64,000 nucleotides of DNA from NCBI GenBank assembly GCA_907165135.1, contig OU015567.1:1364001-1428000 (forward strand), read 5' to 3'. The stretch is from Oikopleura dioica (taxonomy: Eukaryota; Animalia; Chordata). The notes beneath the pieces are model-generated. The model was given only the letters and a program-made list of their open reading frames with translations, did no database searches and was not told where the DNA came from. Shown in pieces: positions 444-47,975 of this stretch (position 1 is the stretch's first letter; each line of letters opens with the position of its first letter). A program made the translations under genes and the position numbers.

Positions 444-2290
444 ATGAAAATTGTCACTCTTAATATTAAAAAAGAGATGTGGCTTTTTGAAGAAAATCAT
501 CAAAAGTTTTTCAACAACTCCGAATTTAAGGAACTCACGTTTTTCAAATTCAACGAAAACAATCTTCTCGAGCTAAGAGTTGCCGTTTGGACTTCAACCT
601 TTTTTCTCTTCGTCGCTGCTGTCATTTTTCTTCTTCTCTTCGCAATTTATTGTTTGGCCATCATAAGGGGCGGAGACAATGAAATCGAATTCAATGACAA
701 TTCTGATTCAGACTTAAAATTATTTCTCGGCACAGTACTTAATTTGTTCCTTTCCATCTTGATTTTTACTTGTGGTTTGTCCTCATGGAGTTATGAAGAC
801 AGACTGTCAAAGCAAAAATTGGCATTTCCTATCATGCTTAGCTCAATAAGTAAGCTTTTCAGAAAAGACCAAATGATAAACTTAAGGCTTTCTTTTTTCA
901 TCCCTCTACGTCATACAAAGAGTCAAGAAATATAAATTTTGCAGGATAAATAATACTGAAGACCAGAGTTGTAAATTTTGTGAGATGAGCTAGCCGAGCT
1001 AGCTGAGCTGCCATCTACCTCAGCTCAGCTCAGTCATTTAAGAAACACAGTAAGCTAAGCTCAGCTCAATTTTACGCCAGCTCAGCTAGCTCAGCTAAAT
1101 CTGAAATGGAATTTTGAAATGCAGCTCAGCTTAGCTTAATGTCAGACCAGCTCAACTAGCTCAGCTCCCTTTTACTTGGTCTGATTTTGGAAGCTTCAAC
1201 TCATTTACCAATTACAGTTGACTCGCACAATTCGGACCCGCACAATTCGGCCCTTTTTTCGAATTTCGCGAAAATTAATGAAAATCGCTCAATCAGCCAT
1301 ATATGTGAATTTCAGTCGAATTTACTTGCTCAAACGTATTTTGGAAGATATATTTACGACAGAAATGCTATTTCTTACTCTTTTTTTTTGATTGACACGT
1401 AGAATTTACGGGAATAATTGACAAAAATAGTGAGATTTTTACATTTTAGGGCTCCGAAATTGATCTTTTTTGATTGGACAGCAAATTAATCCGAATTTCG
1501 GACCGGCACAATTCGGCCCTCTTTCGAGAAATCTGCAAAACGAAAAATGTCCAAATTGTGCGAGTAAACTGTATAATCAGCGCTCTCAGCTCAGGTCAGC
1601 TCAGCTCAAATAATCGTCAGGTCAGCTCAGCTAGCTCAGTTTAAAAAATTGTCTGCTCAGCTCACCCCTGCTCAATTTTTTGAAAAAAGCCAGCTCAGCT
1701 CAGATCAATTGTAATCGAAAACAGCTCAGCTTAGCTCAGCTCAATTTCGACCTAAGCTCAGCTAGCTGAGGACAGAAAAATATTTCAAAAATTTGCAATT
1801 CTGCTGAAGACCTGTCAAGTCACCACAATGAAATGCCTGGTAAGAATAAAAGCCCTTTTGGGAAGACTTGTTTATTTTGAATTCTTATATTATTCAGAGT
1901 CAGAGCGAAATGGAATTTATGGTATTAATCGGACAGTTACTGAACCAACTGCTCCAACTCCTTCTTCATTGAATGACGAACCGCCAGGTATGTGCATGTT
2001 ATTGTTAATTGTGATTTTATTATTTATTTAAATAAGCGTATGATGATTTGTTCGATTATAAGAAGCAAGACACCGAGCAAGAGTCGATCGAGTCAACTTC
2101 TATTGAAGAATCTTCAGTGGAAGATCAAGAAACAAATTTTGGTTGGACCGATTCAGCGTCACGAAGAATCTGTATTTGTGAAGGGAAAATATCAAAATAT
2201 AATGCAATGTTATTGCTCCTTGCAATTATTGAAGTTTTTGTTGATTTTGTGCTCATTACTGTTCATTTACTCGCTATCAATAAAATTTGA
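444..2290 (+). CDS. Multi-pass membrane protein, unknown family; predicted exons 444-849, 887-970, 1810-1839, 1898-1987, 2037-2290
   Basis: Several hydrophobic helices. Removing the 37-nt GT-AG intron 850-886 completes the helix KLAFPIMLSSISFLFSSLYVI. Downstream GT-AG introns 1840-1897 and 1988-2036 keep frame to TGA at 2290. One exon is interrupted by the hAT MITE 964-1803. The 5' end is uncertain. Confidence 0.6.
964..1803. mobile_element. hAT-type MITE with AGCTC/CAGCT subterminal motif arrays
   Basis: Perfect 8-bp TSD CTGAAGAC at 956-963 and 1804-1811. TIR CAGAGTTGTAAATTTT vs reverse complement of the right end CAGAATTGCAAATTTT (14/16). Many AGCTCAGCT motifs inside. Confidence 0.92.
1215..1571. 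mobile_element. Tc1/mariner-type MITE nested in the hAT MITE
   Basis: TA on both flanks (1213-1214, 1572-1573). TIR CAGTTGACTCGCACAATTCGGAC vs CAGTTTACTCGCACAATTTGGAC. Internal copies of GCACAATTCGGCCC. Confidence 0.88.
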
Positions 2291-2446
2291 ATTTTAAAGA
2301 ACAAATAAAAAGATTCATTTCTTTGAATTATTTTTTTTCCGACGCTATTAACTAGATTTCGGACTTTATAAACATTCAGACATTATAAACTCTGTTTTAA
2401 ATGTCCTTTTGCTTATAATATCCGATTGTTAATAATGCCCAAATGT

Positions 2447-3047
2447 TTATAATGTCGTGTAATCGTCACATCCATCGTCTCCCAAGCCGGCTAGGTATCG
2501 TCTCCAACCGATTGTCCTCGTGACTTTGAGTACTCCGTTTTCATCTTTTTTAAACTGCAAACTTCCGGCTCTGAAATGCGTCGCATCATCTACTGCTACT
2601 AGAATCGATAAAAATAGAAAAACGGGATTTTTAAAAAACCTGTTTATCATGCACATGCTCTCTAGTCGAATGACAAAACGGATGAGTTCTCAACAGATTT
2701 GAAAAGACTCGTCCGTATCTACGAAAAAAATATCTCCGTAAAATCAAGGCAACATCGGTTATTTCCTGAATATTGCCCATCGCTTCCGAAAATCTCCGAA
2801 TAAATAAATCACGATATCTGAATTCATCACTGCAAACTTTGCAGTGCAAAGAACACCACGTGGATCATTGACTTCGTGATCCACTATGTAGAAACTTGCT
2901 CCTTTCCGAAAACAATAGTCTAAAAAATCGGACAAGCATCTATAATTTCAATAATTTTGACAAGCGTGTCCAACCCCGCGTCATCGTTTACGCCGTTTTC
3001 TGGCAGAGATTAGCCAGTTGTTGCAGAAATTTAATGCAGATTTTCAT
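2447..3047 (-). CDS. Hypothetical spliced protein, structure unresolved
   Basis: Protein-like minus-strand segments (YCFRKGASFYIVDHEVNDPRGVLCTAK; DDATHFRAGSLQFKKDENGVLKVTRTIGWRRYLAGLGDDGCDDYTTL*) with plausible splice sites. No family recognised. Confidence 0.25.
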
Positions 3048-13791: not shown

Positions 13792-13901
13792 GCAAAAACA
13801 CCTTTTTTCATTCTGACACTTGTCTTTTACCAATCAAATGACATTGAATAAATTAGATAATTTGATAGACGATTTTTTATTCTAGGTAATCAACATTGCA
13901 G

Positions 13902-16900
13902 TTAACAAGTAAAATCGCCTGAGACTTCGAAAAGAACAGGTTGGTGATTTTGATTTGTCTTAACGCCGATGACTTCTTGATTGATGATTTCGTCGTCAAC
14001 AATTTTGATTTTCTCGATTGGAAAAAAGTCCAGCGTGTCCCTTGATTGCGCGCCACAGACGATGAAGATGTCGTTCTCGATTCTCAACGCTGATGATTCT
14101 TTTGAAGCCTAAAAGAAGCCAATGATTTATCGGAGTTTTAGAATAAAAGAACCTCTTGAAGAAGCCCAATGAGACTCCATGCTCCATCTTTCATCAGCCA
14201 AATATCTCGAGTAAGATCGGAAAGATCATCATCGCGTCCTCCAGCCATAATCATTGCACCACTGTCCAAACCAATTAAAACATGAGTCCTAATCGATCTA
14301 AAATTCTAGTAAGTGAAGGAACCTAAGTTGAAGTATTACTTTGGATGATCAGCAAGGCTTGTCCAGCCGGTCGGAGTCAACGTTTCTACTTTCTTGAAGG
14401 GGCCAACATTCAGAGCGGTACTACCACTGACGGATGTTGGTTGGCCTTGATACATAGCCAATTTTCCAAAGTCATGACGGTACTGCGGGACAAAAGTAGG
14501 TGTTGTCGTGAAAGTATCGAATACTTCACATCTTTTGCCCTTATTTTCGTGTGTCAAGATACTTGAGACAGGGCTTGCTATGAGAGAATTTCATGTTTTC
14601 AAGGAACTTATTTTTTAGAAAAAAGTTTCCTTCTGCATTTATCTATTAGATAAAGATGTATATTAAGGAGGTAGTCCCTGCTTTTCGCGATTTCGGCACT
14701 TTTTGAGCAGCGCTCAGACAAATTTGGGCTAATGTTTTAAAAAGCTCATCCCTTCGTCTAGAGTTGCCACTAAACGAAATTCTTCAATTCTAAAAAGTCA
14801 TAATGTAAAGCCTTCGAGCAAAAATTGTGTCTCAAAATCATGAAAAAAATAGTTTTTTAAAGAAGATTAATCTTAAGGGTAGGGTGGTAAATTTGGCCCA
14901 AAGCAGAGCTCATTAACTCTGGACTTATGAATGCTAGAATGCTAGTAATGGCTTAAAATAAAGATCTATCCTAGATCTTCTGAAGTTTTTTCTGTTCTGT
15001 CAAGAAAAAAATCACTTCCGGAGGCTTCAAAGTTGGCATCTCAGCCAAAATCGCAAAAATAGCCAATATACAAGGCTCAAAAACTCCGAAATTTGGCGGA
15101 AATCTTGGAAAAACAAAAAACCTTCTGTAATTCAGAGGATCTAGGAAAGATCTTTATTTTAAGCCATTACTGGGTACTCTAACATTTATAAGTCCAGAGT
15201 TTATGAGCTCTGCTTTGGCCGAATCGACCACCATAGCCTTAAATTATCTTTATAACAGACATTTATTTTTGTATTTTCATAATCTTAAGGTCATCAAAAA
15301 TCGAAATTAAGCTATAATTTTGGATAAAATAGTCAAAAAATCTATTGATTTTGAAATTTTTCATCAAAATTACACTTTTCAAGTGCGATTTTGGGGGCTT
15401 TTCTCTAATATTTGGAAAAAATGATCAATACCAAATTTGTAGCTCTTCTAACGAGCTTTCAGAATCTTTTATAAAAATTGGAAAATTCCGAGTTTGTCAA
15501 AACCGAGGACTACCTCCTTAAATATAAATTCTAGGACTTTCCATAGCGAGCCCTTGCTATACATCTCATCGAAGCAGACAAGTGCTAAAATATTAAATTT
15601 GAGGTCATTTTAATGGTTTTGATTAAACACGAATAGAAGAAAATGCAGTTCTACGGAACCATTGCACTGTTACCTTGCATTCCACCGTCAATGGCTACTG
15701 CGGCAGCTTTAGCGCCATAATAAAAGGTGAATTTTACTGGAAGCTCAGTGAACTCGCACCCATTCAGCATCGCTATCTTTATCAAGTCATCAGACAATGC
15801 TTTACTTTGACATAACTGTACCTTTTGCGCGCTTTCCATTCCTCCCCAGCCTCCTCCGAAAACATACATTTCTCCACGAACGACCGCAAAATGGCTTCCG
15901 TGAGTGTAGAGGGCAAAGTTGTTGGTTGTTGGGTCAATTGTCGAAGGCGCACTGACCGATACATCCGTCATTTCTCCACTTGAAGAGATCGTGTAAGCAT
16001 CTGCCATGTACCTTGGGAACACCAAAATGTGCTTCTCACAACCTTTTAAGCATTCCGAATCGTCAACATGACAGAGATTTATCTTAGAATAATTTTTTCC
16101 GATATTTTTCACAAAGAATTTAAAGAGAGCATCCTCTTGTTTGTCATTTCCTTGGTGAATTATGAACAAGAGGACACATGTGTGAATTCTAGGATCGGCG
16201 CCCACCATCGACCAAATCGACATTGTCGGGTGTCGGGCCGGGTTTTGGTCGGACCGACCCGACACGACATTGAGATTTGTCGTTGGTCGGTCGATGGTCG
16301 GGTTTTTGTCGGGTCTGTGGTCGGTTTTCGCTCATTCTCGGGCATGTTTTCTGACATAAATTCACTTCTGTTATTCGAGAAGTTTTTCATATTTTAATGT
16401 CACTAGCGCCAAACCATTTAGAATTTAGGACATTTATAAAATCGAAAGTTTCATAACCCCCATCTTTCGATTTTGAAGCTTTTTCATCATTCTCATTGGT
16501 TAAAAAAAAACCGACCACCGACCCGACCAAAAGGCCGACTCGACCCGACCCGACCCGACCATGATTTCGGCCATTTCAAAGTGGCCCGACCCGACCCGAC
16601 ATTGAAAAAGGGTGGTCGATGCCGACCCTAGGTGTGAATGGGATGAACAAGGTCAACACTTATTTTTATGGATAAGCTCACCTCGCAATCAAGCGTCATT
16701 TCGGTCGTTTCAGAGCTTCCAGGAAATATAAAATTAGTATACTCAAATTGAACAACGGAATCACTCGTCGACTCGGATCGCCAACGAAAATTCAGTCCAT
16801 TATCGATGGGGCAAAAATTGTCGACAAGCATGAGACTGTAACCAGCGTCCGTGTTATCAGTGACGGTGCATCTTTTGACGATGAATTTGGTGTCATTTAT

Positions 16901-18369
16901 CAATTCTGGAGCTTCGATCTGGGCGAATAGAGTGTTTCCAACAGTGATACTTGTCGATGAAAAATCAACTTTGTTTGTGTAATCCGCACTGTCGTAGAAA
17001 TTAATTGAATAAGACAGGTCAACGAATGGATTTCCAGCGTTGATCGTTTGAGAAACGGTTACTGCGTTGCTTTTTTTTGGTTTAAAAAAATACCATGAAA
17101 AAAAGTCGTCGATGTTAATTTCAAACCAAGCCTTGAATTGTAGTGGCTTGTTGCGGTCATGGTACTGTTAAAATGGCAAGCAAAGTCAAAAGTCCGTTTC
17201 CGCCCAATTACAACGCCATTTGCAACTCTACTTCCAACAGGGCTGGCAAATTAGGGTCCCGCCAGCCGCACTAATTTGAGTTAGAACCCTATTGTTAGAA
17301 CCCTAACTCTCATTTTATAACTTTTTAGTGCGATTAGTACGAGTTGGAAAAAGCCGCACTAAAATCGTCCTAAAAGAGGCGCGCGCTTATTGGTCCGCCA
17401 ATCATGGCGGGTCATTCGTTTTTCTCATCCATTCAGCTCCATTCTTTTTCAATCTTCCACCAATTTGTCCTCCGCGCCTGGTGGGAAGCGCGCGCCGATT
17501 GGATGATGAAAAAGAGCCTCCAAATTAGTACGGTTAGGGCGGCGATTCAGTCCTAATAGACGAAAAAATATCAAGGAAAAAAAATAGGACGGGTAGGACG
17601 GGGATGCCGCACTAATTCGCACTAATTTTGAGTTAGAACCCTAACAATTTTTCGGTAGTGCGGCTGTTAGGACCCTAATTTGCCAGCCCTGACTTCCAAT
17701 ATGAAGAGTATTGCTGAAAGAAAAAGTGCCATTCTTTTCGAGGAAATTTGATTTTTTACCTAAAAAATATCCTTTTGTTGGATCCTATTTCCGTTCCTGG
17801 GTGTCGACAACAGTTCCACAATCGTAAAACGACGATGGTGTTATCTTCCAATGAGTAGTACCGTCTTCAACAGCTGAGCAGTTGTCGTGATTGAGATGGA
17901 TTGATGCTTGATCAACTTCAGGAACAACACATTTATCGAGAAAAATAGTCGGCCCCGATGCTCCACAGGTAATGTTTCCTTTATCCGGCGCAATGAGACA
18001 TGTCTTTCCGTCCGAATCTAACCGTCAAAATAAAACTTTAAAAGTAGTAAAAAAGCCATACCAAGCGTCCAGCAGTCTGGACAGGAGCAAACTCCCTCTG
18101 AGCAAAAGTGGGAGCAGCCTCCATTATTTCCATCGAAACAAGTTGCATGAACTGCACTTGCCAAAATGACAAAGCTTTTTGAGTTCCAAATTAATAGTCA
18201 AAAAAACGCTAAGTCAAAAATTTAGACAAAATTTTGGTTAAAAATTTCAATAATTTTGTTGATTTGAGCCTCCTCCCCGAAAAGCATGGAGTTGCAATAT
18301 GTTTATCAAAGACTGACCTTAAATAATTGAAACGGTTAAAATATTCGAACTTATCCTTATAGGCTTCAT
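13902..18369 (-). CDS. Paralogue B1: signal peptide + EGF + ZP-N/ZP-C module + kelch-like beta-propeller
   Basis: MKPIS... signal across a GA-AG intron (18175-18355). EGF motif CFDGNNGGC, ZP motifs FDFACHF and FIVKRCTV...CPIDN...FEYTNF...LDCE, propeller motifs FAVVRGEMYVFGG and LTPTGW. One ZP-N exon is interrupted by a hAT MITE, so function depends on splicing. Confidence 0.8.
14667..15517. mobile_element. TTAA-targeting (Kolobok-type) MITE, outer element, in a B1 intron
   Basis: TTAA at 14663-14666 and 15518-15521. TIR GGAGGTAGTCC, perfect 11 bp. Absent from paralogue B2. Confidence 0.88.
14877..15238. mobile_element. TTAA-targeting MITE nested in 14667-15517, with ~105-bp imperfect TIRs
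   Basis: TTAA at 14873-14876 and 15239-15242. GG...CC termini. The arms share CAAAGCAGAGCTCAT, CTCTGGACTTAT and GTAATGGCTTAAAATAAAGATCT. Confidence 0.88.
16188..16631. mobile_element. hAT-like MITE with CCGAC(C) motif arrays, intronic in B1
   Basis: GTGTGAAT repeated at 16180-16187 and 16632-16639. Termini CTAGGATCGGC / GCCGACCCTAG. Empty site in B2 near 22240. Confidence 0.8.
17238..17691. mobile_element. hAT-type MITE inserted in a coding exon of B1
   Basis: Perfect 8-bp TSD ACTTCCAA (17230-17237, 17692-17699) and perfect 22-bp TIR CAGGGCTGGCAAATTAGGGTCC. B2 has the empty site within codons IGSRVA near 22850. Confidence 0.95.
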
Positions 18370-18644
18370 CAGCGCTTGAAGAGCTCTTTCTCTAAAAAAA
18401 AATAAAACGCTATCAGTCAAGTACGTCGCGCTTTAACCCAAAAGAACGTGGCTGCCCACGTTTCTAAAAGAAGGAATTCTTGAATTGCACCCAAAGGCAA
18501 GTTAAAGTTCGACGTTTTCTCTCAAGTTTTAATTTATCATGTGATCATTCTGCAACGTTTACATTGTTAACTATAAAACACAGAATTTCATTTTTGATTT
18601 TTTATTTTCAAAAAAAAAAATACAAAATTTGTAAAGCAGGAGTT

Positions 18645-19311: not shown

Positions 19312-19313
19312 CT

Positions 19314-19735: not shown

Positions 19736-19794
19736 AAATTTGATAATTTGACCAACAATCTTTTGACTTAACAAGGAATTAATCAAAATAATAG

Positions 19795-27319: not shown

Positions 27320-27387
27320 AAACAAACGAGTTTGAGCATCAAATTTTTATTGAAAAAATCATGAAAGATGGTAGACAGAGTAAATTT

Positions 27388-30300
27388 TTACTTGGATTCA
27401 AGAGCCTTGGATCGGGCCTTGTTGACGGCGGCTTCGGCCATTTCGGCTCGCTCGTTGGCCTCGTCAAGTTCGTGCTGGACCTTTCGGAATCGGGACATGG
27501 CGGAGGAGGCGGATTCGGTGGCGTCCTCGGCGGCCTTCTTGTAAGACTTGGTCTTGGAGTTGAGCTTGTCGATGGAGTCGGACAATCGGATGAGGTTCTT
27601 CTTGTCTTCATCGTTGGCGTAGTTGGCTTCCTTGTACTTTCGCTCGAGTTTTCGCATGACCTTGGTGTTGTCGCTGGTTCGTCGCTGCTCGGCTTCGAGT
27701 TCCATTTCGATTTCTCGGCACTTGGCTTCGAGCTTCTGGACGGCCTTCTTGCCACCCTTGAGGGCGACCTGCTCGGCTTCGTCGAGTCGCAACTGGAGGT
27801 CTCGGAGCGAGTTCTCCTGGTTCTTCTTCATTCGCTCAAGATGCTGGGACTGGTCCTGCTCCTTCTTGAGATCTTCAGAGAGAAGGGCAGCGGTGGTCAA
27901 GGCCTTCTTGGCAGCATCCTCGGCGGATCGAGCCTCACCGATGGCTTCCTCGACTTCGGTCTTGACGGCGTTGAGTTCGCCCTCGATCTTTCGCTTCTGG
28001 TTGATGAAAGCACCGTTCTGGGTGTGGAGCATGTTGGATCGCTCGTTGGCTTCCATGAGGTCGTTTTCAGCCTGCTTTCGGGTTCGCTCGGCCTGCTCGA
28101 GTCCTTGTCGGAGTTCTTCGATCTCAGAGGTCATGAGACCAACTCGTCTCTCAGAAACAGCGGACTGTTCTCGGAGATCTTCAGTCTGTCGCTGAGAATC
28201 ATCAAGCTTCTGGTTCAAGTCCTTGAGCTGAAGAAGGAGATCCTTGGTGTTCTTCTGGGCATCCTGGGCCTGTCGAGAGGCAGTGGCCATGTTGACTTCC
28301 AGGTCGTTAAGATCGGATTCCATCTTCTTTCGGGATCGGATAGCTTCGCCTCGGGCTCGCATCTCGTTGTCAAGAGAAGCCTGGATCTGCTCAACAGATC
28401 GGGAAGCGTTTCGTCGGGCGTTGTCGATTTCTTCGTCCTTCTCGGCCAATCGTCGGTCGATTTCCTGCTTGAGCTGCTGGAGCTCAACCTGGACTCGAAG
28501 GGTCTTGGCTTCTTCGGACTCGATGGCAGCTTCAGCTTCTTCAAGAGAGGACTGAATGTCAGCTCGCTCCTGGTCGGCGATTCGCTTGGTCTTCTCGAGC
28601 TCGTGGATGGTCTTGGATCCTTCCTGGAGCTGATCGACGAGTTCCTGAGCTTCTTCAGCGAGGTTCTTGTTCTCTCGTCGGATGGCTTCTAGGTTGTCGA
28701 CGGCTTCTTCAGTGGAGTTCTTGAGCTTGAAGAGTTCGGTCTGCTGGTTTCGGACTTCCTTCTGGGCGAACTCAAGCTCGACCTGGGCTTCCTCCTGCTT
28801 CTGCTTGGCTTCAGCAAGGAGCTTATCGAAGTTTCGCTGCTTCTTGTCCAACTGGGCAGCGGCAGAGTTGGATCGCTCAAGATCAGCGGAGAGATCTTCA
28901 ACTTCACCCTGGAGTCGGGTCTTGGTCTTCTCAAGAGATCCACATCGGCCCTGGGCGGCTTCGACCTGCTCTTCAGACTCCTGGAGTCGAGCAACGAGCT
29001 TCTTCTTGGCCTCTTCGAGCTCCTCAGTTCGCTGGATGGCGTCGGTCTCGTACTTGTTTCGCCACTGGACGCATTCATTGTTAGACTTGGTGAGGTTTCG
29101 CTGGAGCTCCTGCTTGGATTCCTGTTCCTCTTCCATCTGCTCTCGGAGCATGTCAGTGTCGTGTCGCTGAGACTGGAGCTGGTGAGAGAGAGAGTTCTTG
29201 GCCTTGGACTCTTCGTCGTGCTGTCGCTTGAGCTCATCGTGAGTCTGAGACAAGGAGTTCTTGTTTCGGACGAGCTGGGAGTTGACGGTATCCTTCTCTT
29301 CAATGTGTCGTCGGAAGTCGTTGATCTCCATCTGGAGTCGGTTGTTCTCGTTGTTGGAGTCAGAGAGAACAGAGGCACCTTCCTCAAGCTTCATCTTGAG
29401 ATCAGCAATGTTGTCCTCGAGGTTACGAGTCTGCTTCTCGTAGTTGAGCTTGGATTTGGTAAGGGACTCGACGTTGACGTGGAGCTCGTCGACTTCCATC
29501 TTGGCCTCAGACTTTTCCTTCTCGAGCTTCTGCTTGATTCGGTTAAGGTTTTCAATCTGCTCAGAGAGAGAAGTGTTCTGGTCGGTCTGCTTCTTTCGGA
29601 TGTTGGAAAGAGAGGACTCGTGATTGAGAGTGGCTTCCTCAAGCTCTCGTCGGACCTTGGCAGCTTCAGCGTCTCGTCGCTTGGAGATTTCGATCTGAGC
29701 CTGAGTGTTGGAACCGGCTTCTTCGAGTCGCTCAGCGAGCTCTTCGAGTTCTCGGGAAAGATCAGCTCGGGTCTTTTCAGATCGAGCTCGGCCGCCTCGC
29801 TCGGATTCGAGTTCCTCCTCGACTTCTTCAGTTCGTCCCTGAAGCTCCTTGATTTTCTTCTGGAGCTGACCAGCAAGAGCCTGTTCGTCCTCAAGCTTGG
29901 CATTGAGCTGAGAATAGTCGAATTCAGACTTCTTCAAGGATTCCTCCTGACCGGCCTTGTCGTTCTCGAGATCCATGATCTGCTCTTGGGAAAGTCGGAT
30001 ATCACCTTCGAGCTTTCTCTTGGCTCGCTCAAGATCCATTCGGGCCTTCTTTTCGGCTTCGAGGCCGATTTCGAGATCATCGACCTGCTGCTCGAGTTTT
30101 CCCTTGGATTTGGTAAGATTGACGACCTTCTCTTCTTCGCTCTGGAGATCTCCAAGAGTCTGCTTGTGTGCTTCCTGGAGGGCCTTCTTTTCCTTTTCGA
30201 GCTTGTGAATGTTCTCGGAGATGGAGGCAAGCTCCTCGGTGACGTTCTTGGACTTGTTCTCAGTAGCGTGCTTTTCTTTCTCGATCTTGGCAAGGGTAAG

Positions 30301-33274
30301 TTCGAGATCGTCGATGTCCTTCTTGAGTTCAGAAGATTCATCTTCGAGCTTTCGCTTCTTGGCAACGAGCTCGTTGTTCATCTCTTCCTCGTCTTCGAGT
30401 TTCTCCTGGAGATCTCGGATCTTGGCATCAAGCTCAATCTTGGCAGCGATGAGTTCTTCGCATCGACCCTCGGCGTCGTCGAGAAGGGCGTTCTGAGCTT
30501 CGGCCTTCTGGGTGAGCTCGTTTCGCTCCTGTTCAAGGGAGACGGACTGCTCTTCGAGTTCGGCTCGTCGCTTCTTCTCCTTTTCGAGCTGCTTCTTGAC
30601 CTCTTCGTAGTTCTTCTCGAGCTCCTGCATCTTCTTGCCTTCTTCGGCCTGGGAGATAAGGGGCTTGATCTTGTAGATGATCTTCATCCATTCCCAATCC
30701 TTCAAGTACTGGAAGGCTCGGATGTTGCCCTGGATGATTTCGATCGAGTCTCGTCGCTTGATCATCTCAGCGTAAGTTCGCTCAGCCAATCGGTATCGCA
30801 TGTAAGACTGGAGAGAAGTAAGAATAGCAGCGATTTTCTCATCTCGCTCATCCTCAAGGTCACCAATAACACCGGCCTTGAAGAAAAGCTTGGTGTGACC
30901 GAACTTGTGCTTGGCATCGGAAAGCTGAATACCAGCGCAGATTTCCTTGGACATGGCCTTCCAGTCGCAGAATTCCTCGTCCTTCTTGGCTTCAGCGTGG
31001 AGGATGACGTATCGCTTGGCGAATTCTTCGTACTGGACTCGAGAGGGGAAACCCTTTCGGCAAATACGGATACCTTCCAACACACCGTTACATCGGAGCT
31101 GATGGAGGACCAAGTTCCAGTCCATGTGTCCTGGCTTTTGATTTCGTTGGGGACAATGCAACGGACAAAGTGGGGCTGGGTGGATCGAAGGTTAGCCATT
31201 AATCGACCGAGAGATTCTCGATGGAGACCAGAGACAGTCTGGAAAGAACCACCCTTCTGTCGCTTACCACCTTTTCCTCCGCCACCCTTCTTGGCGGCTT
31301 CGGCGGCGTCTTCAGCAGACATGTAAGACTCCCACTGCATGATGATACACTTGTTAGAAGATTTCTTGAGGAGACCGACAACAGAGGGGTTGAGGGGATC
31401 CTTGTTCTTGAGGAGCCAATCAGTGACGTTGTAACCGACAGTACCGGCGTAGTGGTAAAGCTCAAAGTGAGGAGCTGGGACCTCAGCGTTCTTGTGGTTC
31501 TTAGGGTTGGGCTTGCCGATCTTGTCGTTCTTACCCAAGTGCTGCTGGAAGAGCTTGTCTCGGAAGGTCATATCAGTAGCCTTGGGGAACATGCACTCTT
31601 CTTCGAGGGTGGACATGATACCAAGTGGCTTCTCGATCAAGTCGATGGTGGCTGCCAAATCCATACCGAAATCGATCATCTCCCACTCGATACCTTCCTT
31701 CTTATATTCTTCCTGTTCAAGGACGAACATGTGGTGGTTGAAGAACTGCTGGAGCTTCTCATTGGTGTAGTTGATGCAAAGCTGTTCGAAGGTGTTGAAT
31801 TCGAAAATTTCGAAACCGGCGATATCCAAAATACCGATGAAGAAAGATCGGGGAGATCGGTGGAAAGAGCTCGGTTGACGACTTCGACGAGCCACTTGAA
31901 GAGTCGATCGAAGACGGCCTTGCAGATGGCCTTGAGGGCGTAGTTGACCTGGTCTACGGTCTGACCCTTGGTGACGTAATCGGCACCGACCTTGATTCGT
32001 GGAGTACAGAGGGCCTTGGTGTATTCGGGTCCAGAGATACCCAACATGTAACCAGCAAGATCAGCGGCCTCGTGTCCGTCGGGCTCGGCCTGTTCTTCTC
32101 GGGGCTTCTGCTTGAACTCCATGTTTCCGGAGTGCATAAGACCAGCAGTAATCATGTAAATACCGGCCTTTTCTTCAGCATTAAAGCCGAGAATATCGAA
32201 GGACTCGTCGGTGGCGTCGAGTTCCTCAATATCGTTGATGGACTTGACCTTGATTTCACCCATGGAGCAGTATTTGTAATCGTAGGGGTTGTGAGTAATC
32301 TGGCACATTTCGTTGATGTCCTTTCGACCTTCGCAGCAGATCTGGTAGAAGATGTGGAAGCATCGTTCGGCCTTGAGCTGGAAGACGACTCGGGACTTTT
32401 CGAGAAGATAGGTATCGATATCACCAGAGGCGAGTTTACCAGTCAAACCGAAGTGAATTCGGATGAATTTACCGAATCGGGAGGAGTTATCGTTACGGGT
32501 GGTCTTGGCGTTACCGAAGGCCTCCATAGCAGGGTTGGCAGCGACAATCTGATCTTCGAGGGTTCCACCACCCTTGAGAGCGGGAGCACCATCGTCACCG
32601 TCTTTGCCACCGGAGCCGAGGGCGGCGACGACGGCGAAGTACTGGATGACTCGCTTGGTGTTGACAGTTTTACCAGCACCAGACTCACCAGTAATCAACA
32701 TGGACTGGTTGTGTCGCTCTCGCAACATATCGTTGTAAGCGTTATCGGAAATGGAGAAGATATGGGGAGGCATTTCGGACTTTCTCTTGCCCTTGTAGCA
32801 ACCGACGACGTGGTTGTCGTACACGGAGAGCCACTTGTAGGGGTTGACGGTGATACAGAAGAGACCGGAGTAGGTGTAGATCATGAATCGTCGGTATCGC
32901 TCGTCCAAGTTGTAGACGACGGCGGCTTCGGAGAGATAGGTCATGTTGGCCAAATCTTCCAAAAGTTCGTACTTTGGAGGGTTCTGCTTCTCGACCTAAG
33001 CATCAAATCAGTCTCCATTTACTCAAATCTTGTGACTTACGTTTTCGTCCTTGAAGTCCTTCTCCTTGTTGTCGTTCAATCGTCGGACCTTGGTGGTGCC
33101 GGGCTTGTCACCCTTGCCGACGACGAGACCCTTGACGTAGCCAGTCTCGGAGAATGGGACCCAGACCTGCTTGGCACCCTCGAAGGGCTGGTTTCGGATC
33201 TCCAACATGGTGGTGTCGGGAAGACGGAGCCATTGGGCGGCGTTTCCGGCTGCCTCGGGATCCCAAAGCGACAT
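27388..33274 (-). CDS. MYH: Myosin heavy chain, class II (muscle type); exons 33041-33274 and 27388-32995, with two apparent 1-nt deletions
   Basis: GESGAGKT P-loop, [39 protein letters not shown] region and long coiled-coil rod. 45-nt intron 32996-33040. Frame breaks at GGGG 31850-31853 and TTTT 31136-31139. Confidence 0.98.
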
Positions 33275-33878
33275 CTTTAATTTTTTATAAGAAAATAGTT
33301 TGAAGAAAAGATTTAATTAAGAAATAAAGAAGTAATTATCGAAAAAAACGATAAATAGAATTTCTCTCTCTCTCTCTCTTACCTTGTTCTTAAGTTTTTG
33401 ACTTTCAGAACAGAATGGTGAAAGAACCTCGATTCCATCTTCTTTTATGCTCTTATCAAAGCTCTTCCACAGGTCGATTTCATCACCCGGACGCCGGCAG
33501 AGCTTCCCAGAGGTGCCAAGTTGCTAATTTTCCTTGTTTCTAGAGTCATCTCCTATGATACAGCACGAGTTGATTCAGTCTTATCATGCCAAAAAGGGTC
33601 ATTAGGGCGGTTTGCTGCCATAAACAGACCCGTGCGGTATCACTTTCAGCTCCTAAAACTCGCGCGATTCACACCTCGCAGTTATTTCTGGCACCCGTTA
33701 GAAGCGTTTTGCAGATTTCAAACTGTAAATCACGGGTTTGAGAAACCTCACTGAGGTACAGTCGTGCGATTTACTGTAAGATCGGTGATTCAAATGAGTA
33801 AAAAGGGCACTTTTTCGCGCAGAAACTCGCGATGAAAGCAATTGAAATGCAATTTATCAATTCAAGAATGAACTTTAA

Positions 33879-34526
33879 GGACCCCCCCGTCAAGATTTGA
33901 GAAATCCTATTTTTGAAATTTTGACCTCAGATTCGGATTCCTCGTGCTAAAAAAACAATTTTTCGCTTCATTTTTTCGGGGCCTATCTCGACTCTAATAC
34001 CCTTAAAAATTGACTTAAAGTTTTGAAAATTGAAAAGGAATCGATGCGCTCGGGAGCGAGAATGAACGACTTTTCCACCAAAAAGGTTAAAATCTAGCTA
34101 TTTTCTAAATTTTTGATATTCAGGCATGTTTTTAATAATTAATTTAATGAAAAATTTATTTTTGTAGTATATTAAAATAAAAATTTCGCCGTTAGAATCA
34201 ATTTTCCATTAAAAATAGAGGGTCATTTTTTAGGTGAATTCATGGATGAATTTTCAAAATTTCCTTATGGTGCCCTCGAGAGAGTCCCAAGCTTTATTTT
34301 CCACGAAAAAAACTTTTCGTCACTTAAGGTCATCTCTGAGATATTCGTGTTTGAAATTTTAAGTTATCGCCATGACATCCTTAAAAGGCGTCCGAGTGAG
34401 CTCAATGTTCTGGTGCCCTAGACCAACTATCGAGCTACGCAGTCGTTGAAAATTTTTCAAAAATCTTAAGGGTATCAACCCGAAATCGATGTTTGAAAAA
34501 GTCATTCCCACATGACGGAGGGGTCC
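33879..34526. mobile_element. TTAA-targeting (Kolobok-type) MITE, GGACCCCCCCGTCA family
   Basis: TTAA at 33875-33878 and 34527-34530. TIR GGACCCCCCCGTCA vs GGACCCCTCCGTCA. Internal CTATCTCGACTC motif shared with copies at 40232, 52129 and 62382. Confidence 0.9.
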
Positions 34527-37879: not shown

Positions 37880-38200
37880 GCTGCTCCCGCATTTCCCAAA
37901 ATCCTGGATTTCCCAAATCCTGGATTTCCCCAAATCCAGAATCGGCGGAATCCTGATTTTGCGATTTGAGAAATTCAGGATTTTGGGAAATCCAGGATTT
38001 GGGAAATCCAGGATTTGGGGAAATCCAGGATTTGGGAAATCCAGGATTTGGGGAAATCCAGGATTTGGGAAATCCAGGATTTTGGGAAATCCAGGGTTTG
38101 GGAATTCCAGGATTTTGGGAAATCCAGGATTTGGGAAATCCAGGATTTTGGGAAATCCAGGATTTGGGAAATCCAAGATTTTGGGAAATGCGGGAGCAGC
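37880..38200. repeat. Foldback minisatellite element: 16/17-bp GGATTT(T)GGGAAATCCA units in opposite orientations
   Basis: Terminal inverted repeat GCTGCTCCCGCATTTCCCAAAATC. About 3 reverse units on the left and about 13 forward units on the right. TTAA close to both ends. Confidence 0.9.
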
Positions 38201-38232
38201 CCATCTTTAATTTTCTAATTCTAGAAAGAAAG

Positions 38233-40082: not shown

Positions 40083-41581
40083 ATGAGATTTTTGAGTCTT
40101 TTTCCAGCTTCAATTTTCGCATACGAAAGTTGCGAGACTTTTTGCAAGAAAGAACTTGAGCAGTGTTTTTTGTCTTGCGATCCTTCCGATTTCTCTTGTC
40201 CACAAGGTAACGTTGAGCTTTTTGTCCCATTGGACCCCCCGTCAGCTTTTTCCTTTGAAAAATGTAAATTTTTAAAAACACCATATTTTTGGTTCTTGAT
40301 GTGTCCTCAGGTTAACTTGCTTCAAAACTTGATAAAAAGAAATTTTTCACCAAAAAAAATCAATATTTTTGCCAAAATAAGGGCAAATTTGTCAATTTTC
40401 GGCGAAAAGTCCAATTTTCGAATGCTTTTTTTGGGGGTGAAGGAGTCGAGATAGACCCCCAAAATGTAGCCTCAAAATTTTAAAATTCCGAAATCTGATT
40501 TTTCGAAAAAAGCTGGGGGGGTCCTTGAAAGGAACTTCAAGAGTGTCTGAGAGACGATACATCTTGTCGGCCAGAATGTGCAGAAGCTAAATTCGCGATT
40601 TTCTACCGCGACGAAGCTTGGACGACGAATTTTCGAATGGACGCTCAAGAGGATTTGACTTCCGAGTTTGACTTTGACAACCACGACGTTGACTACAGTT
40701 GCACTGTTGAGCACAAAGGCAGTTACTATCTTATTGGTGGCTTTGATGATCGAACAAGAGTTTCGATTTTCGAAAACTGCGGATTGCGAAAGGTAACGGA
40801 TTTGGAACAAAACCATCAAATGCACAGATGTCGATCGTTCCAAGACGAAATTTGGATTTGCGGAGATAAGGATCGGGCGAACGAATGCACCTCGCTCAAT
40901 ACGGAGACTCTGGTGGAGACAACAAGGCCATCCTCCGAGATTGGTCATCTTCTTGGCGGTCTGGTTGACTATCAAGGTTAAAAAGAGAAAAAAGGAGATT
41001 TTGTAGAAAAACTTGTTGAGGCACTCTTCTGAGAATCGCGGGGTATTCTAACAAAATCAGTGCTTTGAGCGAAAATGGATCAGAATGGCAATCTTGGGGA
41101 GCAAATATCGGGGACTTTATGCACAGGAAAGGGCTCTGGAATCCTCTTTCTCTTTGATTGTATTTAAACGTTCGTTAAATTTTGACTCGAAATTTTCGAG
41201 CTCTGAAATAGTTTTACGACAATACAAACTGAAGGGACAATTTTCCTCTTCGGTGGCTATTCAGATTTGCAGCAAGAATACACTCATCGGATTTGGAAAT
41301 ATCTTCCTGAATCGCATTCTTGGACGATTGAAGGAAACATGCTCGTCAATAGGATGAACTTTGCCTCTGCTCTAGGGACTCGTTTTCTTTTCTAGAGAAA
41401 AGTAAAGTCCGGTTTCGTAAAACGGGAATCAGTGAATGGTAAAGTCTTTTCCGTTGGCGGATTTTACGAGCTGAATCACGAAGTTTACGATTTTGACACT
41501 GGTTTATCGACTGCTTTGGATACGACGCTAAATTCGAAGCTTTTTGTTGAGCTTGTGCCTTTCTCTTATCTTCAATGCTGA
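40083..41581 (+). CDS. Secreted protein: N-terminal Cys-rich helical module + kelch-like beta-propeller
   Basis: MRFLSLFPASIFAYESCETFCKKELEQCFLSC...ECLRDDTSCRPEC, then YYLIGGFDD, IWICGD, IFLFGG and VFSVGG repeats. Intron 40207-40541. Confidence 0.75.
40232..40524. mobile_element. GGACCCCCC-family MITE (inverted copy) in intron 1 of the propeller gene
   Basis: Termini GGACCCCCCGTCAGCTTTT / AAAAGCTGGGGGGGTCC. The reverse complement aligns along its length with 62382-62717. TSD degenerate. Confidence 0.85.
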
Positions 41582-41636
41582 TTAAAACACTGAAGTAAAC
41601 CCAAGAAAAAAACCCTTCGAATTAGAATTTTTTCTA

Positions 41637-41747
41637 CAAGAGGGTCTTTCAACAACGACCGGGCTGATTTGCATGATTGACCAATCAGAGCACAGAATAA
41701 TTCCTCATGATGGAAATCGCCCCGGTCGTTGTTGAATGACCTCCTTG
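41637..41747. mobile_element. 111-bp hairpin MITE with TA flanks
   Basis: ~30-bp imperfect inverted repeat CAAGAGGGTCTTTCAACAACGACCGGG / CCCGGTCGTTGTTGAATGACCTCCTTG. TA at 41635-41636 and 41748-41749. Central GATTGACCAATCAG. Confidence 0.8.
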
Positions 41748-41805
41748 TAGGATCAGTTTTTGAAACAGTTTTACTGAAACAGAGAGATTTATTATTTTTT
41801 CTTTT

Positions 41806-42919: not shown

Positions 42920-43054
42920 TTTTAAAACTGACTGCGATTTTTGCGAAAAAATACTTATAAATACGGATTCTAGAGATATAACTTAATTTTATTTTCAAAG
43001 TACAATTAACAGAAATAACTTTACAGTCAATAAATTAATGCTCCTCCTCGCGAT

Positions 43055-45629
43055 TTACTTATGGATAAGCTCAGTCGGATGAGCTCCCAAGACGGGGCTG
43101 TCCGCATTGACCATTTTTTCCGTCAGTTCCGCCATGTTTTTCCAATGCGACTCATCTTGTCTTAACAAAAATGATAGAAATGTCTCATCAATAAATAAAA
43201 TTACTCTGTTAGTTGATCAAGAGCGCCATGAATCTTCTTCAACGAGTCGAAAATATAAGTTTTGGCAAGTAGAATTTCCTCTTCCTTGTTTGCAGTTGGG
43301 TGTTTCTGGGCCGCAGTAGCTCTAGAAAACGATATTTACGGTGAATCGTCTAAATTCTTACCTAGATAAAACGGCAGAGCTTGCGAAAAGCTCAATCGCA
43401 GCTTCAGCTATTCTCTTGACATGAAATTGCTGATTGATGATGTCCTGAAAATTGATTTTTTTATGAATTTTTTCCAGAAAAAGTACCTTGTTAAATTTTT
43501 GAAGAATCTTTTTCGACGCAACTTCGAATCTTGTGATGGCTTCGCCGACTTTCTGTGCTTCTGGGTGGAGCGCGGGGTCGACATATTGTTTCAAATCATT
43601 CACCGCTTCAATCAATTTTGAGAACACTCTTTCTTTTATTGAAAAATACCTGTTTTAGACCCCTTTTCTTTCGCCCTCTGGTCCATTTTGAACTTGATCA
43701 AAGTCGGTGCATTCGCGATTGGGCTTTTGGCGGCTTTTGCGATGGGCGCCAATTGTTGACCTGTGTATTGAAGACCTTGAAGACCCACCATTAGTCGAAG
43801 AATGTCATTTGTTCCTTCGAAAATTCGGAAAATTCGGAGATCGCGCATCACTTTTTCCACGCCTTTTACTGTGCTCAAAACACCATAAATAGTGGAAATT
43901 TTTCGCATTAACATATTTTTTATATTTAGTTTAGTCGACTACTTGTTTTATTCAAAATGATCTCTTTCAATTAGGTGGCGAGTATGCACCATCCTTGTTC
44001 AAACATGTATCCCATTCCACCCATAACCTGAATCGTCTCATCACAGCAATGCCAGGCTCTCTCCGAAGCAAAAACTGAAAGGCTCAATAAACCCTTACTC
44101 AAAGAAATGGCTTACTTTTTCCACAAGCAGCCTCAAGATGATAGTTTTCAGTCTTGTGATCCATCGCATTTGCGACCAAATAGCTAACTGCTTCAGAGGC
44201 GTATTGCTCCGCATGCATTCTGGCGAGTTTTTCTTGAATCGCGCCAAATCTGAAAAATTATGGTCTGATGGGGCGATCTAAAATGGCGTGATTTCAGTCT
44301 TATGGCATGATTCTTTCAGTTCTACTATTTTCCCCAATTTCATTTTACAAAAAAAAACAACTCACTTGTAGATCTTATCCCTGAACTGCGTTCGATTCGC
44401 GGCAAATTCCGTCGCTTTCTTTATTAATCCCTTTTGCGTTCCATTCAGCGTCGCACCCATTCCATATCGCCCCGAATTCAACACCTCCATCGCAACTTTG
44501 AATCCTTCTCCCACTTCTCCGATCATATTCTCGGCCGGAATTCTGACATCATCAAAGTAGACCTCAGCAGTATTCGAGCACTTGATCCCCATTTTCTTTT
44601 CCGGAGCGCCGTGAGTCACTCCGCCGAAATCACGCTCGACGATGAAAGCTGTCATTTTATCCTTTATCGTTCCATCTTCTTGTTGAACGGGAACCTGGGC
44701 GAAGACGGTGAAGATGTCGGCTATACCACCGCCAGTGATCCAGATTTTTCCGCCGTTCATAAGATAGCTACCGTCTTCTTGTTTCACTGCTCTTTTCTAG
44801 GGTTAGCAAGTGGAGTTTATCGCAAATGATATATCATATTTTTTCAGAAATTCACATATTTATGGCTGGCCCACAACCATCAGGGAACACGAAAAATTTT
44901 ATTTATTCCTCAAGATCTGTAACGAAGCAAAAATCTTTACTATGTTTACTTTTAAATCATTTATGGTTTTTGAGAATTCCGATTTTTTCATTTGAGACCC
45001 TGGCCTTGTCTGAACGCTGGAGGCATCAGATCCAGTACTTGGCTCAGTCAAGCAAAACGCTGCAATCTTCTCACCAGAAGCAACCAACGGAAGATACTTT
45101 TCCTTCATCTCCTGAGTTCCGAGAATCAAAATCGCCTTGAAACCGATACTCTGATGCGCACCAATATAAATCGAAACACCAAGATCCAGCTCGCCTCCGA
45201 TTTCCGACATTCGCGCCATTTGGACGTTTGACATGCCAAGACCGCCGAGTTCTTCTGGAACTTGCATGCCGAAGAGACCAAAGTCCCTGAGCATTTGGAC
45301 CATTTCTGGGTCGAGGTCGCCGCGAAGGTCATTTTCCAGGGCTTCGTTGGTTCCGTCAAAAGCGTCAAAAGAGGCGGAAAAGAGCTCGTTTAGCTCGTCA
45401 ACTTGTTCCTTAATTTATTGAATAAAAAGATTGATCTGAAAAAAATAAGGAAAAAATTGAATTTTACCTGATTAAAAACTGACGGATACGGGAAAATATT
45501 TTTCGGGTTAATTTCCCCATTAAAAAGACCAAAAACAAACGAGTCACTTCTGTCTGGAATCGGCTTGCTTCCGGCTGCTCTCACTCCTTGTTTGAGAAAA
45601 TTACTCTTTTGCAAAATAACTCTCTTCAT
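43055..45629 (-). CDS. ACADVL: Very-long-chain acyl-CoA dehydrogenase
   Basis: [67 protein letters not shown] and [18 protein letters not shown], plus the C-terminal extension of the VLCAD/ACAD9 class. The DLGV...GAHQSIG motif favours ACADVL. Includes GC-AG and GA-AG introns. Confidence 0.92.
43863..43993 (-). other. Non-canonical GA-AG intron in ACADVL
   Basis: CAAG|GATGG...GTAAAAG|GC gives in-frame [13 protein letters not shown], as expected for the enzyme. Confidence 0.85.
44792..45004 (-). other. Non-canonical GC-AG intron in ACADVL with hAT-like termini
   Basis: ACAAG|GCCAGGGT...ACCCTAGAAAAG|A gives in-frame [11 protein letters not shown]. Confidence 0.85.
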
Positions 45630-46328
45630 TTTTTTCGTCTTTTTTGTCTGATTTTTCGAACTGAACTTTGGAAGGTGGGGCGTAAATAACTCAGAATGCA
45701 GCAAACGAACAAATATTTGAAGAAATACCCAGTCTGTTACTGCTTTCGCTTTTTCCAGAACAAAAAAATTGGTCATAACATGGAACAAATTTTGGTTTGA
45801 AAGGTCGAAGATCAAAAATCAAGGGCGAGGGTTAAAAAAGTGTGGACTTTGATATAAAAATAATCGAATTTTTTAACGGATCCCGAGTATGAATTTTTAT
45901 TATTTTTTATTTGTAAAGTTTTTTGGTATTTAATTTTTGTTACTTTTTATCATGAAAACAAGGGGAAGTTCTTTGGCTAATTTTGAATGACTGATTCATG
46001 TTAACATCCGTTTTCGTCTTGGTCAAATAGACAAAGAGTAAAAATCAAATATAACATCGTATTATCTAAGACTCTTAGTTGAGCGATTTTCAAAGGTCGG
46101 AGAATTAATGATTCAGACATCCGTATCCCACGGTGATCTTTATCCATTCCTCGGATAAATTTTCGCAAGCTTAGTTTTTGGTGAGAAGAGAAAAAAGGGA
46201 AATATAGAAGAATTGAGAAGAAATGAAACTTGGGCTTGGTTTGTTGGCTTCTTTGGGCGCAAGAAATGTTTGTCTCTAGAATTTTACATTAGATATTTTT
46301 CTTCTTCGATTTTTCATCAGTTTTGAAG

Positions 46329-47975
46329 ATGAAATTAAAGCTCTTATTGGCTTTTATAAGCATTCTTGAAAGTCAGAGAATCGGCGCTCCAACTTACACT
46401 GGAATCTCCCTCAAAAACCATGGCTACTACGAACTAACCATCGATACCCAAGATCAAGCTGATGCCTTCAGAGGAATCTCGGAAAACATAAACATTGATT
46501 TCTTCTTCCCTCACAATGGAGCTCGATTCGTAAAAGGAGAAGAAGTGAAATTCTGCATTCAGCCGGAAGATAAAGGCGCGATGGACTTCTTTTTGAAAAC
46601 GCTGGATTTCGACTATGATGATGAAAACCGGCTAGATGAGCTGATTGAGAATGAATTCGACAATAAATCCGGAAGATCTGTTGGCTTCGATTTTAATGTT
46701 TATCACACGCTTCAAGGAAGGGGTTTCAAAATTAGTCATTTAACGAAACTTCTTCTTGATATTTCAATTCAAAATCCCGAGCAAGAACAATTTGCTTACC
46801 TCGATGGTCTTGCTGACATCCCTGGTGTTACTGTATCAAGTATTGGGAGATCTGTAGAGCTTCGAAATCTGTACAAAATTTCAATTGGAGACGATAATTT
46901 GCCAAAAATCGTTGTTGATTGCGGAATTCATGCCCGAGAATGGGCAGCTCATGCGTGGTGCTATAAATTGATCGATGACTTGATCAATGGAGAGTCTGCT
47001 GATATGAAAAGGATCAAAATACAGTTCTTGAAAATTATTCCGAAAAAATTTTGATCTCTTGAAAAGAATTCCGTCAACTGGATCATCTACCCAAATCTCA
47101 ACCCTGACGGCTACGAGTACACCTGGACTGGCTACCGATACTGGCGCAAAAATCGAGCCAACAATCCTGGCTCTAACTGCAAGGGCGTCGATCTGAATCG
47201 AAACTACGACATTGAGTGGATGAATGCGGGAACAAGCAACAGCCCTTGCTCTGACATCTACGGAGGCCCAAGTGCTTTTTCGGAGCCGGAATCGCAAGCG
47301 CATCGGGATGACATGCTCGCCATTGACAATAAACTTGCCTATTTGACGTACCACGCATATTCGCAGTTCATCATTTATCCGTATTCTTCTTCCCACGCGG
47401 CTGAAGCATGGAACAAAGCTGACCTTGACTATGTTGCGAAAGCTATGGTTGATACAATCAGGAACGGGCTTATAAGATCTTTCTTACAAGATTTTTCTTT
47501 CGAAAAATATTTGCAAAGCCCCTAGGAAGTGACACTACTGGAGCATATTATCAATATGGCGAAGGAGCTCCAAGCTTTTACCCCGCTTCTGGCGGCAGTG
47601 ATGACTGGTCACACAATGATTCCGGAGCGAATGTCCCGATTTCCCTGACGATCGAGCTGCGAGATAGAGGACAGTATGGCTTTGCGCTTCCGGAGAGTCA
47701 GTTGGAGCCAATGTATACAGAAAATCTTGCAGCAATGAGAGTAAGAAAATTGCCAAAAAATAACCTGATAAACTTGTTTCTAGACGGCTTATGATCACGT
47801 GAAACCTGGCGGAACTTGTAATCCTCCTTCGTCGAGCGAATCAACATCGACTGACTCCTCATCTACAGCAAGCTCGTCTTCCACTGTCGGATGTCCAAGC
47901 GATGCAACATGCACTTGGCAGTTCAGTACCTTTGTCCCGCTTTTGGTGATTTTAGTTCTGGTGCATAGATTCTAG
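46329..47975 (+). CDS. M14A zinc carboxypeptidase (CPB-like pocket) with Ser/Thr stalk and hydrophobic C-terminus
   Basis: DCGIHAREW, NPDGYEYT, WRKNR, GVDLNRNY, GPSAFSEPE, TYHAYSQ, GGSDDW and IELRD motifs. Pro-domain present. Tail FSTFVPLLVILVLVHRF*. Three non-canonical introns, one of which needs an indel correction. Confidence 0.92.
46717..46785 (+). other. Non-canonical GA-AG intron (69 nt, stop-free, hidden inside the ORF)
   Basis: CAAG|GAAGG...GCAAG|AA gives YHTLQEQFAYLD, which aligns residue for residue with the YHTLEEIYDFLD-type motif of carboxypeptidase A/B. Confidence 0.8.

Follow-up and report, generated by a model that had tools for sequence, protein, structure and literature searches.

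Non-canonical introns account for 11-12% of the introns of the larvacean Oikopleura dioica (PMC8008620), and its GA-AG sites carry a conserved exonic AG and an A at position +3 (Frey and Pucker 2020, PMC7072748). For the larvacean Fritillaria, an origin of non-canonical introns from miniature inverted-repeat transposable elements (MITEs) is summarized in a review (PMC11282704) and a further article (PMC13326754), and in the supplementary data of Gozashti et al. (2022, PMC9860276), a Tara metagenome-assembled genome of Oikopleura is credited with two introner families and O. dioica is coded as introner-positive. In the literature searched, we found no settled explanation for the thousands of GA-, GC- and GG-AG introns of O. 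dioica or for lineage-specific intron origin. Here we describe a window of 64,000 nt of the O. dioica genome (contig OU015567.1, positions 1,364,001-1,428,000 of the forward strand, assembly GCA_907165135.1; all coordinates below are those of the window), which contains older G[ACG]-AG introns and MITE insertions in or beside coding exons. The ends of the older introns are complementary in a fixed register. We tentatively read the older G[ACG]-AG introns of ACADVL, a carboxypeptidase gene and two ZP-domain paralogs as relics of transposon insertions with an 8-bp target site duplication (TSD) that served as both splice sites, with the young insertions as a second layer; we consider this reading nearly, if not quite, probable.

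The first-pass annotation of this DNA had counted at least eight fixed non-canonical introns. Four could be pinned down firmly and two tentatively, and two of the earlier boundaries were off. The firm four, a GC-AG and a GA-AG intron of ACADVL and two GA-AG introns of the carboxypeptidase gene, were set by homology or related contigs. In ACADVL (43006-45629, minus strand), homologous protein fragments fix the junctions ...SSVQT/R/AVKQ... and ...GYMFEQ/G/VEKVMRDL... (slashes mark splice junctions), and GC-AG intron 2 (44792-45004, minus strand, 213 nt) and GA-AG intron 5 (43863-43993, minus strand, 131 nt) are the unique solutions given the protein alignment. The ends of intron 2 read CAGGGT... 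and ...ACCCTA, which places hAT-type ends, CAGGG at +3 and TAGGG at -7, exactly. The remaining 8 or 9 ACADVL introns, checked by eye against the protein, are GT-AG introns of 40-116 nt. As a separate observation, the introns of 131 and 213 nt are far longer than the GT-AG ones, which are mostly 40-61 nt with one of 116 nt.

The boundaries in the carboxypeptidase A-like gene (from 46338, plus strand) were set by aligning three related contigs. GA-AG intron 1 (46717-46785, plus strand, 69 nt) lies in an open frame; it is real because its length in the relatives (67 and 58 nt) differs by numbers that are not multiples of 3. It interrupts the stretch YHTL/QEQF, which we take to be conserved in carboxypeptidases. 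This intron and the two of ACADVL had been predicted at these positions, and the homology and related contigs bear them out. GA-AG intron 3 (47462-47529, plus strand, 68 nt) reads AG/GAACGGGC...CTAGGAAG/TGAC, and the helix GGGCTT/AAGCCC closes it. Its end had been placed at 47525 and is most likely 47529, the sole acceptor in related contig L002; the window sequence also permits an in-frame GG-AG version that stops at 47525. Intron 2 (47001-47066, plus strand) has a fixed acceptor and an uncertain donor, with in-frame candidates GA 46995, GC 46998 and GA 47001 that give lengths of 72, 69 and 66 nt. A 9-bp stem of GATCAAAAT and ATTTTGATC lies inside this intron, and the donor adjacent to the stem, AAAAG/GATC, is out of frame; those that keep the frame are situated 11-17 nt upstream of it. 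All firm introns have a donor after an exonic AG, an AG acceptor and a position required by the protein, as in the G[ACG]-AG class of O. dioica.

The two ends of the non-canonical introns pair with each other. When the duplex energy between the first 16 nt and the last 24 nt of each intron was calculated, the six non-canonical introns gave -7.7 kcal/mol for matched and -5.1 kcal/mol for mismatched partners (permutation p 0.006), compared with -3.3 and -2.8 kcal/mol in 15 GT-AG introns (permutation p 0.15). In a register test, positions +3..+10 were compared with the reverse complement of -14..-7, which pairs position +k with -(k+4). The four firm introns scored 5, 4, 6 and 7 of 8, and the 15 GT-AG introns had a mean of 2.93/8 without any diagonal (Mann-Whitney p 0.003). 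Across a grid of 8 x 13 registers with a mean of 2.1, the top five all fall on one diagonal, on which the 3' overhang equals the 5' overhang plus 4, and the permutation of matched against mismatched ends in the register test gave 4/720. Carboxypeptidase intron 3, for which the register had not been predicted, falls into it with 7/8 when the acceptor corrected from the related contig is used. The arms persist at 4-5/8 in related contigs, while the interiors diverge with indels. These values (4-7/8 in the firm introns) uphold the earlier claim that the first bases of the old non-canonical introns pair with a segment shortly before the acceptor. The offset of 4 equals 6 - 2, the value given by an 8-bp TSD with bases 7-8 as the donor and bases 5-6 as the AG, and the +k with -(k+4) register is the net-zero geometry that the first-pass annotation had described from these TSD positions.

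Further candidate introns of this type occur in the tandem paralogs B1 (~13850-19290, minus strand) and B2 (~19736-24410, minus strand), which have EGF-like, ZP-N and ZP-C parts. A candidate GA-AG intron of B2 (22891-22950, minus strand; B1 counterpart 17734-17796), which would separate the ZP-N exon from the exon targeted by element 2 (see below), competes with GT and GG solutions. The GA-AG solution scores 6/8 in register in both paralogs and the GT alternative 1/8. At another junction, only GA-AG solutions exist in both paralogs and a GT solution is absent; this intron (22686-22726 of B2, minus strand; B1 counterpart 17070-17107) has T9 and A9 runs at its ends. We also noted a candidate 85-nt GA-AG intron at 41127-41211, just after an ATG at 41076, with the ends GAAAGGGCTC and GAGCTCTGAAATAG and the +k with -(k+4) register. 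For annotation, the register would be useful in that it separated competing solutions where the window sequence alone left several non-canonical boundaries unset.

In the mechanism that we propose, an 8-bp TSD would supply both splice sites, with bases 7-8 of its left copy as the donor and bases 5-6 of its right copy as the acceptor AG. The element ends would begin at +3 and stop at -7 of the resulting intron, and would remain as a short helix that pairs +k with -(k+4) and may now keep the weak 5' site close to its 3' partner. A broader version of this idea, which we regard as doubtful, would make the whole class of G[ACG]-AG introns (~11-12%) a fossil record of insertions of 8-bp-TSD transposons into NNNNAGG[ACG] that could be excised without a scar; the former terminal inverted repeats (TIRs) would form the helix now needed to pair the weak donor with the acceptor, and the exonic insertions of today would be an early stage.

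Three young elements in coding exons had been proposed as introns in the making. Element 1 (964-1803, plus strand) is a hAT-like outer element with a perfect 8-bp TSD CTGAAGAC at 956-963 and 1804-1811, TIRs of 16 nt with 88% identity (CAGAGTTGTAAATTTT and CAGAATTGCAAATTTT) and the terminus CAGAG, which fits the hAT start YARNG. Nested in it at ~1213-1573 is a TA-flanked element that starts with CAGTT, has a 25-nt inverted repeat at 92% and looks Tc1/mariner-like. The element splits an exon of gene 1 (444-2300, plus strand; its first exon has a weak resemblance to the final helices of a rhodopsin-type receptor) at 887-1839 into 887-963 and 1812-1839 (plus strand). In two public contigs of a ~87% identical relative, L004 (from a Logan assembly) and L005 (from a marine metagenome), a single CTGAAGAC marks the empty site. 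Compared with L004, the four substitutions in the host exon are all at third codon positions, 900-944 is perfectly conserved, and the next exon contains an in-frame 15-nt indel; the third-position substitutions and this indel indicate that the host exon is coding. The insertion of element 1 into a coding exon, as claimed earlier, is thus supported by its TIRs and TSD, the empty site and the substitution pattern. The exon is preceded by a 37-nt GT-AG intron at 850-886 (plus strand), which has a 1-nt indel and high divergence relative to L004. A reading of 887-944 as a GC-AG intron was rejected on the basis of the related contigs, which show this stretch to be exon and place the true intron at 850-886. 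The left TIR contains GT donors at 968, 971 and 980, each in phase with the AG at 1808-1809, whose use would leave +6, +9 or +18 nt, respectively. GT(971)...AG(1809) could therefore excise the element and leave +9 nt; this junction (970/1810) had been singled out previously and is in frame, but it is one of three GT solutions.

Element 2 (17238-17691, or 17230-17699 with its TSD, minus strand) lies in a coding exon of B1. It has a perfect 22-nt TIR, a perfect 8-bp TSD ACTTCCAA and the terminus CAGGG, which fits YARNG, and its empty site in B2 (22849-22856, minus strand) is inside an open exon frame conserved between the paralogs, in agreement with the exonic position claimed for it. The predicted junction 17690/17230 is in frame. 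In-frame removal is possible by GG or GC donors only, and the proposed CA/GG donor lacks the exonic AG that GA donors of O. dioica normally follow (PMC7072748). A DNA contig that skips element 2 was considered as an empty B1 allele and rejected, as it shares several differences from B1 with B2 and represents the B2 paralog. Counted over nine exon blocks, the differences between B1 and B2 number 36 at first, 32 at second and 116 at third codon positions, and their omega of ~0.18 indicates that both paralogs have been constrained for most of their history. The upstream Cys-rich exon of B1 carries an in-frame TGA (19007-19009, minus strand), created by a 3-nt insertion relative to B2. Because its removal would depend on GG or GC donors and B1 has this earlier stop, element 2 is more likely to be a null lesion than a new intron, and its conversion to an intron appears unlikely. 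Together, the exonic MITE and the TGA point to B1 as a recently disabled copy or allele.

Element 3 (~20636-21286, minus strand) adjoins the 28-nt mini-exon of B2 (21286-21313, minus strand) at the 3' edge of that exon and contains the subterminal sequence TTTGCGAAC. Its outer TIR of 21 nt has 76% identity, and it lacks a clean TSD; the flanks match only at ~6/9 and are an imperfect duplication of a sequence present once in B1. Nested within it is a TTAA-flanked element (20781-21234) with a perfect 17-nt TIR and (TTAGGG)n at ~20830-20875, and the joints of DNA contigs indicate that this part is missing from other copies of the outer MITE. Judged from these features, element 3 is an older, composite MITE with a younger TTAA element nested in it. 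The first bases of element 3 create a donor G/GT at 21285, which is the sole GT donor in frame with the acceptor at 20459, and the former B2 donor, GAT/GTAAAG, persists 650 nt downstream. Element 3 would thus give B2 its only canonical in-frame donor. The earlier junction 21286/20458 is in frame and the only GT solution, but the description of element 3 as a simple young element does not hold, given its composite structure and the missing clean TSD.

In B1, the intron after the mini-exon (14562-15562, minus strand) has in-frame donors at GT 15562, CA 15556 and GG 15553. The interval 14562-15553 had been annotated as the intron; the GG donor at 15553 is indeed in frame, but a canonical GT alternative exists at 15562, which is most likely the donor. 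The intron contains an old MITE-like element with a 12/13 TIR, AGGGCT[C/T]GCTATG, at 15542-15554 and 14570-14582, which predates the B1/B2 duplication. Further nested repeats were observed in the same intron, namely an inverted-repeat pair of TAAGGAGGTAGTCC (14664-15520) and a 426-bp foldback at 72% identity (14843-15268).

A further MITE of 443 bp, which the first-pass annotation had not listed, is located at 16189-16631 (16181-16639 with its TSD, minus strand), within the GT-AG intron that separates the ZP-C exon of B1 from the next one (K1), and is absent from B2. It is young, has a perfect 8-bp TSD GTGTGAAT and begins with (T)CTAGG, a partial fit to YARNG, and, being intronic, it offers a control for the same burst of activity. 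In run X1, the depth of DNA contigs relative to single copy is ~12x for the element at 17238, 5-8x for that at 16189 and 20-50x for that at 20636, and contigs of other loci stop exactly at 17238, 17691, 16189 and 16632. The depths and the break-offs at the exact ends confirm the element boundaries and the multi-copy status. With sizes of 443-840 bp, the elements are too small to encode a transposase. The 8-bp TSD typical of hAT MITEs is present in CTGAAGAC, ACTTCCAA and GTGTGAAT and absent from element 3. Multi-copy families of non-autonomous DNA transposons are therefore active in this O. dioica genome: hAT-like elements with 8-bp TSDs, one TTAA-flanked and one TA-flanked element, with insertions in two coding exons and at the edge of one mini-exon.

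RNA reads from two metatranscriptomes and one RNA run were compared with 16000-21999. In this interval, none of the three runs covered any exon of B1 or B2. The metatranscriptome contigs matched only the MITE bodies of other loci, and the single RNA run gave 37 partial reads. A search for O. dioica RNA runs with words of this locus returned none. In RNA run X12, 23 reads match only 18102-18141 (40 nt, EGF-like exon), beyond which they run into unrelated sequence in either direction; that run contains transcripts of a related gene with this motif.

Several observations speak against the origin of the older introns from transposons. Mismatched ends within the non-canonical class also pair, at 4.17/8, so that a class-wide motif, with GG near +5 and +6 and CC near -9 and -10, accounts for much of the signal. 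TSD remnants were not detectable in the old introns: in-register junction repeats outside the AAG are at background (1.67 versus 1.50), and the AAG or CAAG repeats shared by the junctions, to which the first-pass annotation had drawn attention, do not go beyond the splice-site consensus. The junction-repeat run used a wrong span for carboxypeptidase intron 3, and correction by hand (3/8) leaves the result unchanged. In this window, the suggested comparison of non-canonical with GT-AG introns therefore came out divided, with an excess of end pairing but none of TSD-like repeats. No repeat of the window is similar to any of the old introns, and extended TIR tests were negative for both ACADVL introns and positive only for the B1 intron after the mini-exon. 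The motif RGGGCTY is not enriched (17 found versus 19.8 expected). The net-zero geometry is seen in 0 of the 3 young elements. The usual target preference of hAT elements is nTnnnnAn, and a G at TSD position 7 runs counter to it. In the interval compared with RNA, no young element has transcript support, B1 and B2 exons are uncovered, and the copy that bears element 2 has a premature stop. The sample consists of four firm and two tentative introns from three gene families, three of the firm four had been chosen in the first-pass annotation for this very geometry, and an annotation-free scan of the window found ~25 in-register stems at every offset, a high background with no excess at 4.

Many of these points would also be expected if the two layers were unrelated, a reading that we regard as a serious possibility, albeit not a probable one. 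The insertions would then be ordinary alleles of recent origin that are probably deleterious or heterozygous, or else lesions of decaying duplicates, and the end pairing would be a selected splicing signal of the intron class, G-rich after the weak donor and C-rich before a purine-rich 3' tail, that was never a transposon. The TGA of B1 besides its insertion, the missing RNA support for splicing at 16000-21999 and the missing TSD remnants agree with it, mismatched partners pair nearly as well as matched ones, and each element offers several in-frame solutions, which makes any single one weak evidence; the caution of the first-pass annotation about chance in-frame solutions was well founded. 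Related contigs retain the arms and show decay of the interiors, a pattern that suggests function over relic, and for the GA-AG sites of O. dioica conserved positions in the flanks have already been described (PMC7072748). The last six bases of the six non-canonical introns are purines except for one T and one C among 36, in contrast to the T-rich ends of the GT-AG introns; such a tail fits a copied exon end and equally a separate signal. A pure protein-binding signal, however, predicts no intron-specific complementarity beyond the class motif, yet matched ends exceed mismatched ones by both duplex energy and register; nor would such a signal lead one to expect an offset of precisely 4. MITE-filled introns do exist in this locus, since a MITE-like element plainly makes up the B1/B2 intron after the mini-exon.

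The stems and their register might also be an artefact of a small sample and many analytical choices, arising from permissive donors, flexible boundaries and GC-richer ends, which we consider improbable. The four firm introns, the selection of three of them for this geometry and the equal yield of the window-wide scan at every offset would agree with such an artefact, as would whole-intron folding, which is ordinary for the ACADVL introns (z of +1.06 and +0.26); two carboxypeptidase introns reach ~-2.1, and the best fold of one of these pairs with an internal partner. On the other hand, the boundaries come from homology and related contigs and not from the stems, carboxypeptidase intron 3 entered the register only after its acceptor had been corrected independently, the five top registers share one diagonal, and the two ZP paralogs agree. 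We regard the architecture of the old non-canonical introns as a real pattern in a small sample, which fits the MITE model and does not prove it. Of the overall system proposed in the first-pass annotation, the insertions are real and the pairing pattern fits, but the splicing of young elements has no RNA support and element 2 is likely a lesion; the conversion of young insertions into introns is, on present sequence evidence, unproven. Similarly, hAT MITEs as the source of introns gain from their activity, their insertion into coding exons and the net-zero register of the old introns, but neither TSD remnants nor kinship with repeats connect them to these introns.

The window sequence as a whole has many G[ACG]-AG introns, tiny introns and a TTAGGG array. 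The region upstream of B1 (19315-19739) and that upstream of B2 (26600-27001) share 86% identity, which implies a tandem unit of ~5.9-7.3 kb, the second unit being ~2.2 kb larger. Very long open frames of up to 1257 aa occur on both strands at 27250-33280, probably belonging to a low-complexity or repeat-coding gene, and this region was excluded from every statistic. Pfam searches with 30 further open frames matched only ZP-N, CUB and a weak galactosyltransferase, and because so little was matched, no further introns fixed by homology could be added. Protein searches returned no annotated proteins of this genome. An all-against-all pairing of open-frame junctions gave 2,170 pairs, was too noisy and was not used. 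An unclassified dispersed repeat family of ~340 bp has four copies in the window (33874-34008, 40232-40530, 52137-52457 and 62376-62717) with 70-87% identity, and self-comparison revealed palindromic, foldback-like stretches at 37880-38200, 25808-26160 and 41634-41750.

The introns fixed here fit the described G[ACG]-AG introns of O. dioica, with a GA, GC or GG donor after an exonic AG and an A at +3 (PMC8008620, PMC7072748). For this class, we found no fixed-register inverted repeat, transposon origin or TSD-born splice sites in the literature searched. If the pattern holds, the fixed-register inverted repeat would be a concrete rule open to genome-wide testing and would come with a mechanism, a TSD-born intron stabilized by a helix, and it would tie O. 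dioica to Fritillaria and to the algal introner cases. For Micromonas and Aureococcus (Huff, Zilberman and Roy 2016, as cited in PMC13326754), and across eukaryotes in PMC9860276, introners are described as DNA transposons in coding exons that use an element end and the TSD as splice sites; likewise, elements 1 and 2 lie in coding sequence and have empty sites, in related contigs and in paralog B2, respectively. The present case differs from introners in that both splice sites would be derived from the TSD and the donors would be G[ACG] instead of GT, and in that it is known from DNA alone, within a window where no old intron matches a repeat. Fritillaria borealis (Henriet et al. 2019, as summarized in PMC11282704) is likewise a larvacean with lineage-specific non-canonical introns, which carry TIRs and TSDs and are removed by a permissive U2 spliceosome. 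These introns have AG-AC or AG-AT termini for the most part and account for >90% of its introns according to that summary, whereas those in O. dioica are G[ACG]-AG, represent ~11-12% (PMC8008620) and in our window have neither AG-AC or AG-AT termini nor recognizable TSDs. The nonconventional introns of euglenids (reviewed in PMC11282704) also combine non-canonical borders with a short helix that joins the intron ends; their pairing of +4 to +6 with -8 to -6 differs from the offset of 4 seen here and belongs to a different organism and context of removal.

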